Shown here: one piece after another, positions 1 through 52,814 of the stretch | Layout: the number at the start of each line of letters is the position of its first letter | Numbering within the stretch: position 1 is the stretch's first letter | Origin: Dicyema japonicum | Taxonomy: Eukaryota; Animalia; Dicyemida | Length of the DNA stretch: 64,000 bases | NCBI GenBank assembly: GCA_011109175.1 | Contig: RDEW01000027.1 | Coordinates: forward strand, 1-64,000 | Direction: 5' to 3' | Made by a program: the position numbers and the translations under genes | Notes under the pieces: generated by a model | What the model was told of the DNA's origin: nothing | What the model saw: only the letters and a program-made list of their open reading frames with translations | Databases searched by the model: none

Positions 1-25
1 ATAATATAATCGTAACACTTGTCCA

Positions 26-641
26 ATGTTAGTGGTGTTATTGTTAGTAACATTAATCACTAATGAAGATTACTCATTCGAACTGGCGGATGGTCAAATG
101 GAATGCTTTGGTCAGTTCTTAAAGGCTAACATGCCTTTGGAGTTTATTTACCAAGTAAGTATAACATTCATTGTAGGTGTATTCGGGAGTCAACAATGAA
201 TTGGATGTATTCATATACAGACCCGACCATATACTACTAAAATCCTTTAGTAAGGAGTCCTACGGATATCTTGATGATGATATTAAACAAGAGGGATTCT
301 ACAGATTTTGCTTTGACAACAGTTTTTTCCTACAGTTCGCACAAACTGGTGCACTTTAGTTTCAACCACTGGGATCACGAAGATGACGAGGAGTTGAACT
401 CAGTGGGGGTCCTCAGTCAGGCAGAACATAGTTTATCGAAAATGCATAATTTATTGGAGACAATTGGGAGTGACATTAAGGAAATTTCTATTATGGAGAG
501 GAATGATGAAAATTATGCGGATATCATATTTAACTCAATTCTGACATGGGGATGGTTAACTTTGTGGCTATTGTGGCGATTCAGGTGACCTACATTCTTT
601 TTGTGAGGGATTTTTTTAGTGGGAGAAGAAGTTTGGGTTGA
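26..641 (+). CDS. p24/TMED (emp24/gp25L) GOLD-domain cargo receptor
   Basis: ATG26 starts a signal peptide, then GOLD motifs (ECFGQ..., YRFCFDNSFS), coiled coil, TM and a short tail. One 22-nt GT-AG intron at 155-176. Two homopolymer frameshifts (extra T near 325, missing G near 550) are needed to join the frames. Confidence 0.85.
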
Positions 642-1294
642 TTTTTGGGTTATTATTTACTTTTAATGTTTCTATATAAGTTAGTTATATGTGCATGGTT
701 ATGTATTCTGAGGGATAATAGGAAATTATTATTGTCTAAATCCTCTTCTGTCCAAAAAGTGTTCCATGGAGAGTTTTAGTATTCCCGATCTAAACCATAC
801 CTCTATCCTCCTCACTAACTCCTTTAGTCTCCCTTTGAAAGCGCATGTGACTTGGACATATTATGACATCAGCCGCATAAATCAGTGGTCTCGTAGTTGA
901 AAAGGTCGGATTTGCAATTGTCTGAGGGATAATGGAAGATGATGTAGGATTGCTTATTCCCCCTAACTCGTAACGATGTAAAATGTAAACTTTTCTGTGG
1001 TAGCATTCACTAATACAAAATTGCGTGATTTATTATTGGATTTGTAGTACGTACATATTGGGGGTTGTTTATTTATGCCTTAAAGGAATCAAAAATATTT
1101 GTAGATCGGCTTGATATGTTGTTGGCTAGCTCGTTATTTCTAAGACGCTATGTTACATTTTTATGAAAAGATAACAAATTAATAGGTATCTCAAACACGG
1201 GCAACTAGACTTGATCAAAACTGGGGCGGATTACCTTTTCTTTGGTTGATATGAAAAGTAATCCTTGTTGTGTTATGTTCAGTATATAAACGTT

Positions 1295-1500
1295 TTATAA
1301 ACTCCATGTGGTGATCTCAGTCCACTTGTCTAATATTGAAGGCCAGGAAAAACATCGACTGTTTTTTCGAAACCATACAGATTTTTCATCTGTGTATGTG
1401 GTCACTCCCAATATCCGTCGAAAAACTGGATGCTCCGCGTTAGATAAGGTGCGGAACCAGGAAAACTCCTGCCTTGTCTCCATGAAGGTTCATTTTCGAT
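1295..1500 (-). mobile_element. Degenerate non-LTR retrotransposon C-terminal remnant (RTE-like)
   Basis: RRILGVT motif typical of the region downstream of RT; no intact ORF. Confidence 0.4.
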
Positions 1501-1519
1501 AGATTTATTCCCATGCGGT

Positions 1520-1620
1520 GCAATTTATTTAAGTAATAATGGGGTCACCGAGAAAGAAAGACAATAAAAGGTCAAACTATTAGGTGACCCCTTTCACCAA
1601 GATCAGTCATATCATCCTTT
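1520..1620 (-). mobile_element. LINE-D 3-prime terminus (5-prime truncated)
   Basis: Ends ...KGVT-stop like other LINE-D copies; 9-bp stem ggggtcacc (1541-1549) / ggtgacccc (1583-1591). Confidence 0.6.
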
Positions 1621-1628
1621 GTCTAGAT

Positions 1629-1790
1629 CAGTGGTTCTCAACCTTTTTTGGTCGTGGACCCCTTGTGAGTGAATAAAAAAATTTGCGGACCCCAACATAT
1701 TTTTACAAGTTTTTTGTCAAAAAATTATTACTTTTCTAAAAACAATTTATATGTACCCATTTTATTTAACAAACAATAAAAAAGTTAATA
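1629..1790. mobile_element. hAT (Charlie/Buster-type) terminal inverted repeat end
   Basis: CAGTGGTTCTCAACCTTTT preceded by the 8-mer gtctagat (NTCTAGAN target consensus), with subterminal ggacccc repeats. The partner end was not found. Confidence 0.7.
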
Positions 1791-1809
1791 TATTTAATAA
1801 TCAACAACC

Positions 1810-3590
1810 TTCCTAACCTGCCTGTTTGCCAGGTTCGATTCTGGTTTCTGAAACAACTCCGATAGCGATTTGTCCAATTGAACCATCTTCCTATATGGCA
1901 TCTCAGAGTTCTGCCTCTTATACTCCAGTGTCAGGCTCTCTAGGGTCCGCTTTAACACAGTGGACTGTAGATAGGCCTAGAGCTTCCTATCTACCCCCAA
2001 CTGCTTTAGATAACCCTTGTGGTGCTTTGTTGCAATTCCTTCCCACGTCATTACTATAGGAATAACGAGGACCTTGCAACCAAGCATCTGCCCCATCTCG
2101 TTTGCAAGAAAGTAATCTTTCCTTTTTTTCTCCACCTCCACAGTCTGCAAACGGTCTTAAGACGTGATGCCAACCTCTATGATAAGGACTTGGCCAGACT
2201 CCTTATCGTGTACCACAATGTCCGGTTTATTGTGCTTGACTAGCACCGAGGTACGGATAACACTGTCTACCTTAATTTGGACCCTGGTGTTCTCTACTAC
2301 AGATTGCACCTTATGAGTCCGCAACTTTCTGGTGTGGCGAATACTTATTGCATAGTAGAAGACGAAGACTCCTTACTACCTCGTTATGCCTCCACACATA
2401 TTCGTGGCAGAGCATGGATCCACATCGAGTGGCTAAATAACTTACAGTGGGGACATGTATTTGTTGATCGACCCCAAAAAATATTGCGATCTTGCATATA
2501 CGTGTACAGCGCCTCCGATCGAGGTGAGTTGTCACCGTATTTTAGCCATATTGTCGACGGCTTAAGGTCGACATGTGGGTTGTCCAATGCTCTGAAGAGG
2601 ACCTTATGAAGGCTTTTTAAGTTGATCTTTCCATCAAATTATTATATTGTAATTCGATCAACGCCTTCACATTTACTAGCCCACCATCATCAACACCATA
2701 CTTAGCAGATAAAAAAGGTCTGATAGTGCCTAGGTGGGTTGCCCGTAAATTTCTCGGTCGTTATTATGGCGTACTTCCTAGCAGACACACTTGACCCAGC
2801 AATCAGTGTGTCGTGCATTCGCATTAGAATACGCTCACTTAGTTGGACTACTCCACACAGTCCAGGGCCGATTTATCACGGGGTAAATATAGTCTCTCCT
2901 TATTGGCTGCCAGCACATGGACATGGTTCTCTCTGAGTACTCCACGGATCATAACATCCATCTCATCATACTATTTGGCTCAAACTCCACAACACCTATG
3001 TAGTAGTTTAGCACGAGACAGCATACTCATTTAATGCTAGGAACAAATTCCTTGCATTTAGAGACGTCTTACACAATACGCTGCTTTTTACGGATGCCTT
3101 CAGTCTCAGGCATTATAAGGGACTTTGGAGATTCGGTAACACCCAGATACTTATATCCTTCGTGTTCCTCTAGGACTTTTACTAACTCGCTACATACTTG
3201 CGTGTTAGTCGCAGACTTTGAATAATTCAAGTCTAGTCCTATGCTCTCAAAGAATTCCCTGGCACAGACCCCCATGGAGTAGAGCTCCTCGGCTGTTCGA
3301 GCATACATCTTCAGGTCATCAATAATGTATTGGGTTTAATAAGACATCTACGATTAAATTTTCATGCCGGATGACTCGCCTACGTGGTGGCATCGCTCTC
3401 TTGAAGTGTTGGAAAAGAGTCTTAAACTCCCTATCCCGCAACCATGGAGGCGCATATGGTGTCGGATCCTGCTTTTTTCCTGTGGAGATGTGGAGGAAAG
3501 TCCTAGACCAGATCTAGTCATAATACAAATTAACATAAAATTGGAATTCTTAAGGCTTTTACGCACCCATCGTTAGAGCTTCTATACAAA
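1810..3590 (-). mobile_element. R4/Dong-like RLE-type non-LTR retrotransposon, degenerate
   Basis: RT motifs (YIDDLKMYA, YKYLGV), CPHCK...TRC...RHNEVV zinc/RHN motif, and a restriction-like endonuclease (IIEVGIT...EKKRK); frameshifted. Confidence 0.8.
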
Positions 3591-3639
3591 GAATTTGTTC
3601 TACTGAGTATCGAGTGCGCCTGTGCTGCATGGATTATCC

Positions 3640-4110
3640 CTTTATCACTATCTCACAGAGCAAGCTGGAAGTGTTATTTAGGGTCCTGGCTCAATGCCTT
3701 CCCATACGAGCATTTGGTACTCGACTAAAATACAATCCGCGTTTGAATTACTCTTTGGCTAGGCCTTGACGTCTGCTTGCATCACCAATGCCGATGTGAT
3801 GGTTGAAGGGAAAAGATGGGGTGCGTCATACACGGATACTATTAAATGGGAATTTGCTCAAGTCATCGTTGCACACGGTTCCAGAGCAAGCACTGTTGAG
3901 TGTTTGAAAAGCAGAAGGTACCACGGCATCGTTGACCGGTTCATTTTCCAGCCAATCACGTTAAGATATTTGGCGTCATTGGTCCGAGCACGTCTTTAGC
4001 ATAAGAATGAACCTAGATGATGCAATGGCTTTTCCAGAACATTGGGATTGCAGTTATGAGTGGTAACTCCCATTGTGTGCTTAAAGCCTGCAGACCATAG
4101 TGGAGACCTG
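3640..4110 (+). mobile_element. CRE-clade non-LTR retrotransposon, 3-prime fragment
   Basis: GSWLNAFP, CLHHQCRC, ASYTDT...FIFQPI, QNIGIAVMSGN motifs. Confidence 0.7.
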
Positions 4111-4152
4111 TCACAACAACTTTATTTTATTAATAAAAATTAATTTAAATGT

Positions 4153-4635
4153 TCAAATAAAAGCATTACGGAAAGTAGTGTTTGACTGGGCGTAAAATAC
4201 AATGATTGCATTCTTATTGGTAGTATTAGTGAGTGAATATGAGTTACCTAATAATAAATTAATGACTGACCTGCCTTTACGTTAAAATACGAATATTGGT
4301 TTGCCTGTGTTGGAGGACTGTCATTTATTTGTAATTTTACTGATCCTTCGTTTATAACACATGACTATGTTATAATAATAATAACTAGGTCTATGTTGTC
4401 CAAATTGCACATTTCTTTCCTTTTTGAACCATATATTATCATTCCCCTGGAGGCTATTCCATTTCTTCCACTCATGGGAAACATGAATATTTCGTACGAG
4501 TCACATTTGTGGTGCAAATCATTTTTGTTAAGAACGTGACCTGTCAGTTAATCGAAATTACAACATTTTGATGAAATCTTTGTTTTCTTCTTAGACCGTG
4601 CATCCTTCTAAAAATAACAATAATCACACCACCAT
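4153..4635 (-). CDS. CENPC: CENP-C/Mif2 C-terminal cupin-domain protein, apparently cupin-only (about 131 aa)
   Basis: Splicing four GT-AG introns (22, 21, 21, 23 nt) gives a stop-free frame with no frameshift: MVKDARSKKK...GIASRGMIIYGSKRKEMCNLDNIDLSCVINEGSVKLQINDSPPTQANQYSYFNVKAGNSYSLTNTTNKNAIIVFYAQ. This matches the Mif2/CENP-C cupin pattern (ASG.L, V.QG.V.V, F.VP.GN.Y.I.N...A.LFF.Q). Confidence 0.7.
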
Positions 4636-4709
4636 ATTTAAAAACGAACCGCCTTTTATTATTTAAATTATTTAGTATAAATATTATTTAATTAATTATA
4701 ATATATTAT

Positions 4710-4770
4710 TAGCCACGCAGTCAGGGCAGCCGCTAAATAACCGTTTACTCTTTTTTACAAATAAAATCTA
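4710..4770 (+). mobile_element. CRE-clade element 3-prime tail
   Basis: agccacgcagtcagggcagc...accgtttactct is nearly identical to the 3-prime end of the CRE copy at 47570-47620. Confidence 0.6.
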
Positions 4771-4859
4771 CAGAAATCGTCACCTCAATTGACAAGATAT
4801 ATTATTTATCCAAATCATTGAAAATTATCTAATTCAAAATTTCTTGTCTAAAGACATAA

Positions 4860-5660
4860 TACAGACCAATATCCATACTATGTACTTCTTAGATCAAGTT
4901 CACCCACATCTTTCCGTGGTACCATTGACAGCACGGTTTGAAAAAGACTTATCGGCTATTAAACATTATTGAAAAGGGTCAATTTTACCTTGGATGGTCT
5001 CCAATCAAACCTTTGCCTCCTGAAAACTTTAATTTAGTGATTTTATAAGGTTTTTAATTCTGTTTCAGAAAATCTTTATGATAAAGAGTTTCTTGAAATT
5101 CAAAACATTCAAATGATTGTTTGATAACTTAACAACGACCTACTAATACTATTATACAGATGACACGATCCTTACATTGACAACTGTGTCTAACAACCAG
5201 CTGGATATAAAAAACAACGAGATATTTAATTTATTAACTCAGGGAATTACACTAGAGTTTTCTGTAAGGCTTCGATTTGAAGAATGCCTGATTTTACCAA
5301 AAACACATCTGCTCTCATTTGAAGGACCAACCAGTAGGAATTTCGTGGGATCACACAAAGTATATAATAAACGAAGCAGCAAGCCAGTACCTCGGCACGC
5401 GGGAGATGGCCAGTAAGGGTCGGACGACACATACAGAACTAGTAAAGAAGCTAGCAAAGGAGTTAAAAGAAATCCATACAAAAAAAACTAAACGAAAAAG
5501 ACACTCCTCCAATGCAAAACGGTTTCGTGGAAGACCAGAACTACCCTCCCGGTCGTTCTACAAAACGATCTGAAAGCCGTGAAGAAAACATTGGCATCTG
5601 GTGACGATCTGGACTCACTGAGGGACCTAGCAAAGAACAGAAGAGTTTGGAGCAACCTAA
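4860..5660 (+). mobile_element. LINE remnants: RT fragment plus RTE-like 3-prime end
   Basis: LLYTDDT RT motif near 5150. RFRGRPRTTLPVVLQNDLK...DDLDSLRDLA at 5520-5650 matches the RTE C-terminus at 16016-16225. Confidence 0.65.
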
Positions 5661-7428
5661 CTAATTCTCATATTTTTTGCTGCACATAAATATTATGGCT
5701 CTCGTGAAAGTGCTAATAATATCAATTTCTACTTCAAATATAAGGACTTGCGACTGTGAACGTGCTTCACATTACTTTAATATTTCCAAGTGTTGTAGTA
5801 AGAATATTTAATCTTTTAATGACAACCTCTCCGCTGGAGTAAAGAAGAGAAAGATCCTTTTTGGAAACCAGCAGGTAAATGACATTTTTGATTTGTGTGG
5901 ATTCAATGACATTTTTAGGAATTGAAGAAGGCAAGAAAAAAACCCAAAGACAATAAATAAACCCATTTATTGTTAAATATTACTCAAATTCGTTAATTGT
6001 GTAGTTTAAAACTGATTTTTGAATATAATTAAGGGAGTCAAAAAAATCAGAATTATCATAGTTTATTCTAAACAGACCTTCAAATTTTTTACTATTTTCA
6101 ATCAAGTAAATTGCTTTGTCGTATTGCTTGGATTCCACAATATACGATAGGACAGGATTTACATCGTTGTTACATTTTTCCAACATTGTACAGATCCTGG
6201 GAGTTATATTCACCCTTGTGTGTCACAGTTCGAATACCTTTTATTCAAAATTACTTGTTTCAGTAATTTATGATCATTATTTTCAAGTAAGTACTCAACA
6301 AGACACTCTGATAGTTCTCTACTCCACTTTATCTGTTCGTAGCTTCCATTCGCTAGAGCTTCACAATATAGCATCCCCACGTGGTTAGTGTCGAGGCTTC
6401 TAATAATAAGGAAAATAACTACCATTTTTAAATTTATTGAAAATATCAACATTTCTGAGAATAGGACAGTGAACTGCTATTAAAGCAGCCTTTTTGTATT
6501 TTTTACCGTCAAAGTGATGATAAAACAGTTTTATATATTTTTTGATATTTTCCTGCATTTTTTCATAATTTATATCCAATTCGTCTATAATTAATACATT
6601 TTACGCCTATTTCTAGGAGATCCTGGGTTTTTATTGAATCACAGAGTTTACCGACTATATTGATGTTGGATGGAAGCCCACTCTCGATGTGACTTTTAGC
6701 AATATTGATCACATTCATCATCTTTTCTTCTCGGCACTTTAGAATCCGGTTTTGGGCCAACAATTTGTCTCGTTCTTTGGTAGTGTCCACCAAAAAGTCA
6801 ATGCCCGTTGTCCACTCGTCATTTGAAACAAAATATCTCTTCTTAAAATTCAACTTTTCTAACTCCTGGTCGATCCTCACACCTTTTTCGATTAAATACT
6901 CAATGTCAGCGTCTTTCTCATCAGAAATTTCTTAACTAAAGAAACATGGAGATACTTAAGTGACCCGACCCTGACGGATTGTTCCTTTCCCTTCGTAGAT
7001 TGTAAATTTTCTCATTTTGACTGTCAACCAAGTTTTGAACAAACTCACAATCTAGTTTCAGGTTGTTATTCTCAGATTTTAAATCATCATATCTGGTGGA
7101 TGAAGCAAATGTAAACTTTTCTTGTAGGTCTTCATAGGCATCTTGATAGTTTTGATTATTTTGATGATTGAGGAGTATCCTCCGATCCTCCAGGAGCTTT
7201 TCATTCCTTGACTGAATTTCGTTTTTGATGTGTTTGAAAAATTCGTTATACTCGGTGTTGATTTTCTGACATATTTTTTTATAGTTTCTCATTTCATCAA
7301 TCAACTTTGGTAATGTCATGACTTACAATTTCAAATTGTTCGTTTGTCTCAACTATTATTTCTTGATAGTCTTTATCCCCAATCAGGGAGTTTAGGTTTT
7401 CCTGTATTTTGTAGTAATTCCTTAACAT
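5661..7428 (-). CDS. CLHC1: CLHC1-like protein (coiled coil plus clathrin heavy-chain linker)
   Basis: 22-25 nt introns (one GC-AG, 6585-6606) join ORFs 6936-7319, 6563-6880, 6210-6452 and 5980-6213. Contains YKKAALIAVHCPILRN...FNKFK and MLYCEAL, resembling the clathrin linker, and an N-terminal IDEMRNYKKICQKINTEY. One inferred homopolymer frameshift; the 3-prime end is uncertain. Confidence 0.6.
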
Positions 7429-15989: not shown

Positions 15990-18600
15990 ATTAACTTAAT
16001 TTAACCTCCTCGATCCTACGGCAGTTTCCTCAGATCGTCCAGGTAGTCTCCACTTCTTAGACTTTTGTCCACGAGCTTTAGATCTTTGTCAAGTGTTTCT
16101 GGTAGTGTAATACGCTGGCGCCCACGAAAACAAGGTCCCTGTCTCATGAAGTAATCCTCCATTGCTATTTTTGCTGGAGCACCCAAGTCCATACGTAAGA
16201 TATGTCCAAATAGCCTCCAACGCATATCAACAATTTCGAGACTCAGTGGACTCGTATAACACCTCTTATATAGTGATTCCTTGTTTACTCTTGCTGGCCA
16301 GTTCAGTCCTAGTAAGGATCTAGTTGTCTTTGATGGAAAGAGTCAAGTCCAAGTTATTAGGTTTTGAACGTCCACCAGGTCGATGAATTGTATATTAGAA
16401 TTGGCTTGACAAAGGCTACATACAGTCTCAAACGAATTGATGTTCAGGACCGTCGTTTGCCAATCCACTCTTTCTTCAAATTGTTCATCTTTACTTTATA
16501 GAAAGCCATTTTTCTGGCTATATCTTGATTGTCTCCAATTAAAGAGCCATGTTTGTTCGTTTTTTGCCATGTTTCACTTGATTTGTCTTCCATTCTTTTG
16601 ATTTCACAATGTCGTTTATTGCGGTGTTCGTTCCAAGAAACTATTAGTTCAGCTCAGCAGTTGCCATCTCGTGGAATCGAAGTACCGCCGAGTTGTAATC
16701 TGAAAACAGTCGACGTTGTCTGCGTAAGCCATTTAGACGATCTTGCAATCATAAAATTTACGAAAATATCGTAATGCCGCCTCCAGATATATGACAAATA
16801 GCAGGGCGAGAGGGAATCTCCTGGAAAGTACCAACATTGCACGTAAATTCACGGGAAAACGTCTTACCGAACCGCACTCTGAGCTTCGTGTTTGAGATAG
16901 CAACACTCTGATTATATTGACAGAATCAGGGTCCAAGAATTGTTCCAGTATCATGAGAAGTAGACCATGCCGGACCGTGTTAAAGGCCATAGAGAGGTCT
17001 ATTTCCAGGACTGTTTTTGCACTTTCAAATCTCTGGTTGAAAGCGCAGCGCCACTTGTGGCTCCATACTACATCCGCAGTGGATCTCCTGTCCTGATCCA
17101 CTGTGACTAAGGGATAGATTGTTGACCACTAGTTCTCTGATTCGGTTCAACGTATCTAATGTCAGAAGTTTCCGTAAGGTGTTTGTTTAGCAGGATTATT
17201 GGACGTAGGTTTTCAACAAGCCCATCATTCTTGTTAGGTTTTTGTATTGGTATTAATAGTCCGGATCCAAGAGCGGGGTATTCTTTTTTTTATAAACATA
17301 GAGTTAAGTATTCCGCCAGTTTGTCTGTTAGTGCAGGCGGTTTTGAAAAGTTCTAAATGGATTCCATCCGGTCCAGGGGAGCGGCCATTTATACGTTTGA
17401 CCTTTGATTTAAGATTTTGCCAGGTATGATTGCTTTATCGAGTTGAGTGGCATATCCACAATTATGATCAGATATTCCTCCGCGGACAGTTAATATATCG
17501 TCGAAATACGACGCAATGTATTCAACCTGATTTTTGAGATTTGTTAAGAATCTTCCATTCCCATCATGGTGTTAGAGTTTGTTTGTTTGTTTTCTTCTGT
17601 TGAGCAGACTGATGGCAGTTAACATTTTTGACGACTCTTTGAACTGTTCAACTTATGCATCTCTTAGATCAAGTAGGTTAGTGGCGTTCTACTTATTCAA
17701 AATCTTTATGGTTTTTTGTGTAGATGTTCTTCTAGACTTTAATATTTGTTTCCTCACCGGATCAGGCGTATTTTTCAACTGTAATCTTAGTTCCAATTGT
17801 TATTTTAATAGGGCAGGAACATCTGGATGTATACATTTTTTAATCAGTGCTGATATCCAGGTTCCGATACTCCCATTTGCTGCCGAAAGTATCCCTTTCA
17901 TTGTATCCGACCAGGTGACTGCTGGAAGAAGTCCGGGATCTAGGTTTCGGAGAAATCTCGTAATTGATATTTGTTAGTTGTCTCTGATCGATGTAGAGTA
18001 ACACAGGTGTTTCATTTTGTAGCTTCTTCTCTACATTTACGTTTAGCTCTTTTCGTCTTAGGTCAGTTAATGTCCTTGTTGTGAACATGGCAGAGACTAT
18101 CTTCTGATCAATGTCAATAGCTGCACCTCCGTAAGACCTTGAGGCACGTAGGAGTGATTTTTCTTCGACTAGTCAGATGATGCAGTCAAATTGGATGAAA
18201 ATGTTTATAGAGCCTTTGAAAGTCATGTCGTTTTATGACGCGCAGGGTGTCGGAAACCAGTACTACATAGGAACACAGATCAAATGCCTTGCAAAATTTA
18301 CAAAAAATTGCAAAATAATCTTTGGCTATAAAGAATTCCATATTTGGTTTCAATTTATGAAAACTAGTTGACGAAGGGAAATTCATTTTGTGGACAGGAT
18401 TTGATTTATTCATATTGATGACAAGAGTCAACTCGAGACAACTGAAGGAATAAGTGGAAATTCTTGGACGCCTAGCTACACTAAAAAGCCACGACGCACG
18501 TGAAACTCGTTGACTTCTTTAGTTGAACTCTGTTGCAATAGTGAGAGGAAACGCAACGTCGATAATGTCGGCGGGGTCCACTTTGGATAATTGGCTGTGT
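15990..18600 (-). mobile_element. RTE-like retrotransposon, long degenerate copy
   Basis: SPGPDGIHLELF, RRSTADVVWSH, IDLSMAFNTV, LFVIYLEAALR, RWRLFGHILRM motifs in the expected order. Confidence 0.8.
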
Positions 18601-51817: not shown

Positions 51818-52814
51818 TCAAATAAAAGAAATAGCGGAAATAAATTCCAACAAGTCCAAATATATACGTCCATCACCACCATCAGAAACACTCATATTCC
51901 CATCACTGCTTATCGATACACCACCGATTTCCACTTCTTGCAGATTAAACCCCTAAATACAGCTAACTTCATACTTCCAAGCCAAACTCCGTCTCGGTTA
52001 TCGCCAGACCTACAACGGCGTTAAAAAATGTCAGCACAGTCTCAAGCTCCAGGAGACGCATCCCAGACTCATTCGGAACACATGTGTCCTTCCATAAATC
52101 TGCCAGTTGACGGGTACTCAAAATTCCAGTCGTCTCAGCGAGCTTTCCGGAACAGGTTTTCATGGCCAATTCAATCCTGTTGACACAGTCAAAAGATTCC
52201 TGTAAATAATGAACTCCAACAGTGAAGAGGTAGAACAAGTTAATTGAAGATATTTTCAGAAAAAACATGCAAGCCAGAAATGTGGTCTAATTCGTAAATT
52301 ATGCATACTTTCAACCATTTTGTGACAACAGTGCACATTATTTCGTCACCTTTGAGCAAAAGGAGAGGAAAAAAGAGAATTTGGGGGTTATTTGGATTTT
52401 TATTTCGCTTATTTGAGTACATCAAGGCTGTCGCGATCATGTTTTTTGAATCCTCGTTCGTTACCTCGACTTTTATCTCAAGGAAAGCAACACTTTCATG
52501 CTCGGTGTAGTTAATTTGAACAGTTGGAAGACAAATTTCAACTTTTTTGGAATAATGATCCATTAAATTTGTCAAAAAAGAATAAATATCAAATTTTAGG
52601 GAGTTTTCAAGCGCTTTTATTTTGCTGGTAAGGCTTCCTCCGACACAAATCAGATGGGAAAGTGAGTATAATTGCCAATCTCCAAGCAAACAATCTGCAC
52701 TACAGTTGGAAGCAATTTCTGAGTTATTTTAAATTCAAAAATACCATTTAATGCCCATTCCTCGATTATTTTGTAATAATTGGTATTAGGAACACATCGG
52801 AACGAAATAACCAT
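51818..52814 (-). CDS. CENPL: Centromere protein L
   Basis: GDWQLYSLSHL, FFPLLLLKGDEIMCTVVTKWLK, RQLADLWK, FFNAVVGLAI, EVEIGGVSISSDGNM follow the CENP-L pattern; four 21-26 nt introns. Confidence 0.75.

Follow-up and report, generated by a model that had tools for sequence, protein, structure and literature searches.

Positions 4153-4635 of the window (the whole 64,000-nucleotide stretch of Dicyema japonicum DNA that was analysed, on contig C190) hold a minus-strand open reading frame for 130 amino acids, which runs from the ATG at 4635-4633 to the TGA at 4155-4153 once four GT..AG introns are removed (Table 1). This model was rebuilt from the coordinates, and it bears out the earlier note, which had described four micro-introns and an open reading frame of about 131 amino acids, an in-frame stop just upstream of the ATG, and a gene that the ORF track misses: the stop is a TAA at 4663-4665, in frame with the ATG and 30 nt before it, and the list of open reading frames contains only fragments of the gene. 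Without splicing, the longest open reading frame of the segment has 39 codons. The acceptor of exon 2 carries a TAG, and no in-frame upstream extension of that exon is possible. The predicted protein consists of an N-terminal tail of 17 residues, which opens MKDARSKKKTK and does not resemble a signal peptide, and a beta-rich domain of about 110 residues. The two overlapping hexamers past the stop codon probably serve as the poly(A) signal. The locus is thus best read as a real, very small protein-coding gene of five exons and four introns of 21-25 nt, whose product would join a Lys/Arg-rich tail to a domain with the signature of a CENP-C/Mif2-type cupin in its C-terminal strands.

Table 1. Features of the candidate gene, of its surroundings in the window, and of related loci on other contigs (positions without a contig name refer to the window)
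Feature	Position	Strand	Remarks
Exon 1	4633-4635	-	start codon only; GT directly after the ATG
Intron 1	4608-4632	-	25 nt; GT..TTTTTAG
Exon 2	4562-4607	-	basic tail KDARSKKKTKISSKC; at its 3' end, the alignment with the C45 paralogue continues over the splice junction
Intron 2	4541-4561	-	21 nt; phase 1; terminal CTGACAG
Exon 3	4386-4540	-	51 aa; first half of the putative beta-barrel
Intron 3	4365-4385	-	21 nt; phase 0
Exon 4	4271-4364	-	SCVINEGSVKLQIN...YFNVKA(G)
Intron 4	4248-4270	-	23 nt; phase 1; within a Gly codon
Exon 5	4153-4247	-	(G)NSYSLTNTTNKNAIIVFYAQ...; TGA at 4153-4155
Two overlapping AATAAA hexamers	4121-4131	-	22-34 nt past the stop
Repeat and LINE 3' debris between the gene and the next gene	4710-5720	+	read depth; LINE tail ORF
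Coiled coil and clathrin-H-link gene, CLHC1-like	5767-7319	-	micro-intron gene, separate
C46-type copy	C46:64709-64798 (gene 64.0-64.8 kb)	+	intact-looking
C46-type copy	C46:55861-55950	+	one TAA
C46-type copy	C317:214354-214392	-	broken after 13 residues
CenH3-like H3 variant L013	C223:2077145-2077414	+	out of frame with ATG at A8/A7 run
CenH3-like H3 variant L014	C46:34382-34639	-	out of frame with ATG at A8/A7 run
CenH3-like H3 variant L015/L021	C168:221424-221834	-	ATG in frame; 67-aa in-frame internal tandem repeat
CenH3-like H3 variant L028	C146:178228-178461	+	has stops

The published genome of D. japonicum comprises 67.5 Mb in 377 scaffolds, with a GC content of 36.7%, 49% repeats, a heterozygosity of 1.24% and a mean intron length of 38 bp (PMC6736024), so that tiny introns are expected and are no finding by themselves. 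All four fit the dicyemid micro-intron pattern (GT-AG, about 20-40 nt, one long frame restored), and conserved histone H3 sequence of the same genome is broken by introns of 21 and 24 nt, which are thereby validated by homology and indicate that introns of this type are real there. An open reading frame of at least 131 codons with at most four micro-introns arose in 0.5% of shuffles of the segment, a proportion to be read together with the fact that other segments of the window reach 131 codons more often and that many of those are real genes. The junction at intron 2 has independent backing from a paralogue on another contig (C45:24815-24970), where an open frame of 95 codons matches residues 12-68 of the protein at 30% identity and runs uninterrupted across the position of the junction (tblastn E 3e-7 within the C45 locus); this paralogue is decayed downstream of its open frame.

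The sequence of the gene is confirmed by four DNA runs from one sample, apart from positions 4443-4449 in exon 3, where all four runs and the copies on C101 and C146 read ASGEM versus ASRGM in the window. The discrepancy consists of four in-frame base differences (T>C, C>T, T>C, G>T) that form a compensated shift pair and replace Arg-Gly by Gly-Glu. The runs, all of them DNA, contain no splice joints. The locus itself is assembled three times, on C190, at C101:1115827-1116309 and at C146:4090-4572, in copies that are collinear over 3.5 kb with 97-99% identity; positions 1-6135 of the window match C101:1114327-1117809, an internal part of that contig, and C146:2590-6072, at a contig start, again collinearly and with 97-99% identity. 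The three copies are most likely allelic or redundant scaffolds that are residual in the haploid-merged assembly.

Upstream of the ATG the gene is bounded by mobile-element sequence. The bins 4602-4835 and 5304-5771 reach depths of up to 8e5 in the DNA runs and are therefore high-copy repeats, and between them lies a diverged single-copy stretch that reads as a plus-strand LINE tail; the retroelement debris that had been reported from 4710 to 5660 was found again in this way, slightly extended (Table 1). Beyond it stands a separate micro-intron gene, in which the open reading frame at 6400-6579 matches PF13838 (Clathrin_H_link) with E 5.8e-4; an additional weak match of the same gene is to TSNAXIP1_N. 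That this minus-strand neighbour supplies N-terminal exons to the candidate gene was considered and rejected, given its CLHC1-like, Clathrin_H_link character and the 1 kb of LINE debris in between. Because the debris and the neighbour bound the locus, there is no room for further upstream exons, and the claim of a short gene that stands by itself and carries a basic N-terminal tail is upheld.

Parts of the gene have been copied elsewhere. Degenerate, unspliced copies at C5:7689-7859 and C350:92367-92464 match positions 4462-4697 of the window at 78% identity and span the promoter, exons 1 and 2 and the start of exon 3, the ATG region of exon 1 being kept in the copy on C350; their boundary is the edge of the high-copy repeat near 4700, and they look like products of flank transduction that a retroelement brought about. 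A second branch of the family was reached through exon 5, to which the last exon of a gene on C46 has 43% identity (E 0.08 genome-wide); a profile search then finds three copies of the C46 type (Table 1). Removal of three GT-AG introns (37, 25 and 29 nt) from the C46 copy yields a stop-free C-terminal part of 86 amino acids, ending ...VFQKADVFFIPG / GSYSITNSTRRTATLTYVF..., and the model covers this part, brute-force enumeration of spliced open reading frames being too permissive for the 5' part of the gene. The last intron, of 29 nt, lies in phase 1 within a Gly codon, at the same codon position and in the same phase as intron 4 of the gene on C190, and the intron after ..IDLQC matches the place of intron 3 (after ..IDL). 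Local alignment of the C190-type and C46-type proteins scores 57, a value reached by none of 2000 shuffles. Both copies on C46 open MSVKKS[TK]R, and the branch ends ...ADVFFIPGGSYSITN... Between the paralogues the protein is conserved and the DNA is not; this protein-level conservation, the shared intron position and the decay of sister copies together argue that the intact loci are real genes. The gene on C190 is one branch of a lineage-specific family of mini-proteins, with the copies on C46 and C317 as the other.

The same surroundings can be given a less constructive reading, in which the locus would be what is left of an older and longer gene: transposon insertions and duplications severed its 3' end, which codes for the cupin, and the open reading frame survives there unused, as a relic. 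Repeat and LINE debris directly upstream, a first exon whose coding part is the ATG alone, the partial unspliced 5' copies on C5 and C350 and the decayed copy on C45 are what such a history could leave behind. Set against this, the locus has its four splice sites, open reading frame, start codon and poly(A) hexamers all undamaged while its sister copies have decayed; an open reading frame of this length is rare in shuffles; and the C46 branch, which is independent, shares the short architecture and has an N-terminus of Met and basic residues of its own. Together these points make a relic improbable.

CENP-C usually links CENP-A chromatin to the remainder of the kinetochore, and the animal protein is long, with multiple motifs. 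The cupin of CENP-C, Mif2 and Cnp3 (PF11699) is a beta-rich domain of about 85-110 amino acids at the extreme C-terminus, with the motif order G-x-hydrophobic strand, I/V-x-x-G-x-V-x-L, and F-x-V-x-x-G-N-x-Y-x-L-x-N ... A-x-hydrophobic-x-F-x-Q. The C-terminal end of the predicted protein, with I-N-E-G-S-V-K-L-Q-I, about 15 further residues, and then Y-F-N-V-K-A-G-N-S-Y-S-L-T-N-T-T-N-K-N-A-I-I-V-F-Y-A-Q, presumably corresponds to the second half of this cupin in both order and spacing. The C46/C317 branch has the more canonical FFIPGGSYSITN motif, and with F-F-I-P-G-G-x-Y-x-I-x-N the C46 branch is, we take it, nearer to the cupins of CENP-C than the gene on C190 is. The Dicyema protein has 130 amino acids versus several hundred in CENP-C, and it is without the Mis12-binding N-terminus, the CENP-C motif and the Pro before G-N.

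Family and structure searches returned nothing that would tie the gene to CENP-C. In a six-frame search of the whole genome, PF11699 (cut-off for membership 29 bits) has no match at the locus; its one match genome-wide, on C318, is antisense to a LINE reverse transcriptase and was judged spurious. A Pfam search with exon pieces found 0 families, and phmmer searches of the PDB with the exons, with a 42-aa frame that retains the G-N-S-Y motif and with two family profiles found no CENP-C chain. A search of the ESM Atlas with exon pieces and a word search with the family alignment found nothing, and phmmer with exon 3 against 1.84 billion proteins gave 0 matches, so that the gene's own exon-3 open reading frame is apparently missing from that library. 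Peptide-word searches of the literature for CENP-C sequences found none, and a literature search found no paper that joins Dicyema with the kinetochore. The blank results from exon pieces are weak evidence against CENP-C, because in the six-frame genome search even Ndc80 was silent, with 0 matches as for Mis12, CENP-N and CENP-L.

Two readings of a real gene meet at this point. The one that we prefer, with a confidence that falls a little short of even, is that the locus encodes a reduced, CENP-C-derived, CENP-C-like cupin paralogue. The other is that the gene belongs to a lineage-specific family of small beta-rich or cupin-like proteins that has neither CENP-C ancestry nor a kinetochore role, its likeness to CENP-C being a coincidence of short motifs. 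The latter would account for the blank outcome of all family and structure searches, for a protein rich in N-x-T/S and Cys, which is atypical of CENP-C, and for the existence of multiple copies with decayed members beside repeats; a multi-copy family with broken members among transposons is unusual for CENP-C. It is nevertheless the less likely of the two, since two diverged paralogues agree with the cupins of CENP-C in how the motifs are ordered and spaced and in their location at the extreme C-terminus, the N-terminus does not resemble a signal peptide, and blank searches are expected from exon-sized pieces when Ndc80 is blank too.

The reduced CENP-C paralogue that we prefer would have retained the dimerising cupin together with a basic patch, and would have lost the Pro and the aromatic residues that read the tail of CENP-A. 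The N-terminal tail, ARSKKKTKISSKCC, has the spacing of the CENP-C motif with the P and the YW both missing. The earlier note had stated that no CENP-C motif lies nearby, and regular-expression searches with R..[RK]....P..[YFW]W and with looser forms agree, finding none in 4636-5800 and none within 13 kb of the gene. Across the whole window the looser forms match once, at 17593, and that match is interrupted by a stop. The Mis12-complex-binding N-terminus and the long disordered middle of CENP-C are likewise absent, as 17 residues precede the domain and a stop lies 30 nt upstream. The proposal of a minimal CENP-C holds in so far as the gene is short and without the motif; that it is the single minimal CENP-C of the lineage is weakened by the paralogous family on C46 and C317, which has a basic N-terminus of its own. 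We infer a cupin fold, CENP-C ancestry and dimerisation for the protein, along with a kinetochore role: it would pair either with itself or with a protein of the other branch, and act in this form at the inner kinetochore.

Cupin paralogues of this kind have precedents. The apicomplexan proteins AKiT9, AKiT10 and SEA1 are CENP-C-derived cupin paralogues without a CENP-A-binding motif, a heterodimer has been proposed for them, and the orthologues of AKiT9 are short (Brusini et al. 2022, PMC9418836). These proteins are tied to CENP-C by HMM (e-8 to e-28) and are localised to the kinetochore; the Dicyema lineage is an animal one, and its family includes broken copies. Duplication of an inner-kinetochore gene within an animal lineage is known from Cenp-C of Drosophila, where the paralogues are described as duplicates of the whole of Cenp-C, versus stubs of 130 amino acids in Dicyema (bioRxiv 10.1101/134817). 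The 'cryptic' CENP-C of Tetrahymena, KiTT8, was found by HMM-versus-HMM comparison and a predicted cupin fold, and so sets an example for the use of profiles and folds in such cases; unlike the Dicyema gene, it has retained both a CENP-C-like motif and one that binds Mis12 (bioRxiv 10.1101/2025.11.28.691167). If such a protein works at dicyemid centromeres, a basic patch and a cupin in 130 residues would mark the minimum for the CENP-C part of an animal kinetochore, in parallel to the motif-less cupin paralogues of apicomplexans, and would offer a compact system for what the cupin does alone. If the CENP-C label holds, the loci would form a minimal animal CENP-C paralogue family; if it does not, they would be one more lineage-specific family of micro-intron genes in a genome whose tiny introns are already on record.

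The earlier note had also entertained a kinetochore independent of CENP-A, and the histone complement speaks against this. A search for the Histone family found, besides a group of H3 variants, canonical H3 clusters, one divergent H3 (C5:31774) and an H3.3-like gene. A longer loop 1 and the absence of Gln68 are hallmarks of CenH3, and H3 variants with both hallmarks occur at at least four loci (Table 1). L013, L014 and L015 have a two-residue insertion in loop 1 relative to solved H3 in the PDB alignment, LPLARVV or LPFARVV in place of LPFQRLV (Ala for Gln68), and a short non-H3 tail, MRTKR... The presence of these variants makes a CENP-A-free kinetochore unlikely. The corresponding account, in which CENP-A has been lost and the kinetochore works without it on only the cupin stub of CENP-C, would draw on the absence of the canonical CENP-C motif and on the condition of the CenH3-like copies, of which the two cleanest are out of frame at poly-A, one has stops and one is internally duplicated. 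It is very improbable, given that the loop-1 insertion and the replacement of Gln68 recur at at least four loci, one of them with an ATG in frame, and that the frame problems fall in homopolymer runs, which are prone to assembly errors.

The CenH3-like variants terminate at ...AQRLR or ...AQRLRF, without a C-terminal tail, and histones that end in this way would give an aromatic CENP-C motif no such tail to read. A far-reaching, and quite improbable, extension of the preferred reading is that dicyemid CENP-C as a whole has shrunk to proteins of about 130-200 amino acids, each with a basic Arg/Lys anchor of the [KR][KR]S type and a dimerising cupin, in two branches that may heterodimerise, and that the YW reader and the tail of CENP-A were lost together.

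The suggestion that CENP-L is kept fared less well. The 149-aa open reading frame at 52240-52689 (minus strand) does match PF13092 (CENP-L), but with E 0.0086 and 15.8 bits the match lies under the cut-off of 24.4 bits, the six-frame search for CENP-L gave 0 matches, and a single-sequence AlphaFold model of the frame has a pLDDT of 43.5, too low to be of use; a possible CENP-L at this position is a hint only. The divergent H3 variant at C5:31774-32154 (plus strand, L012) is not CenH3-like: it has a 21-nt intron, an H3-like N-terminal tail (..TARKSTGGK) and a loop 1 of normal length.
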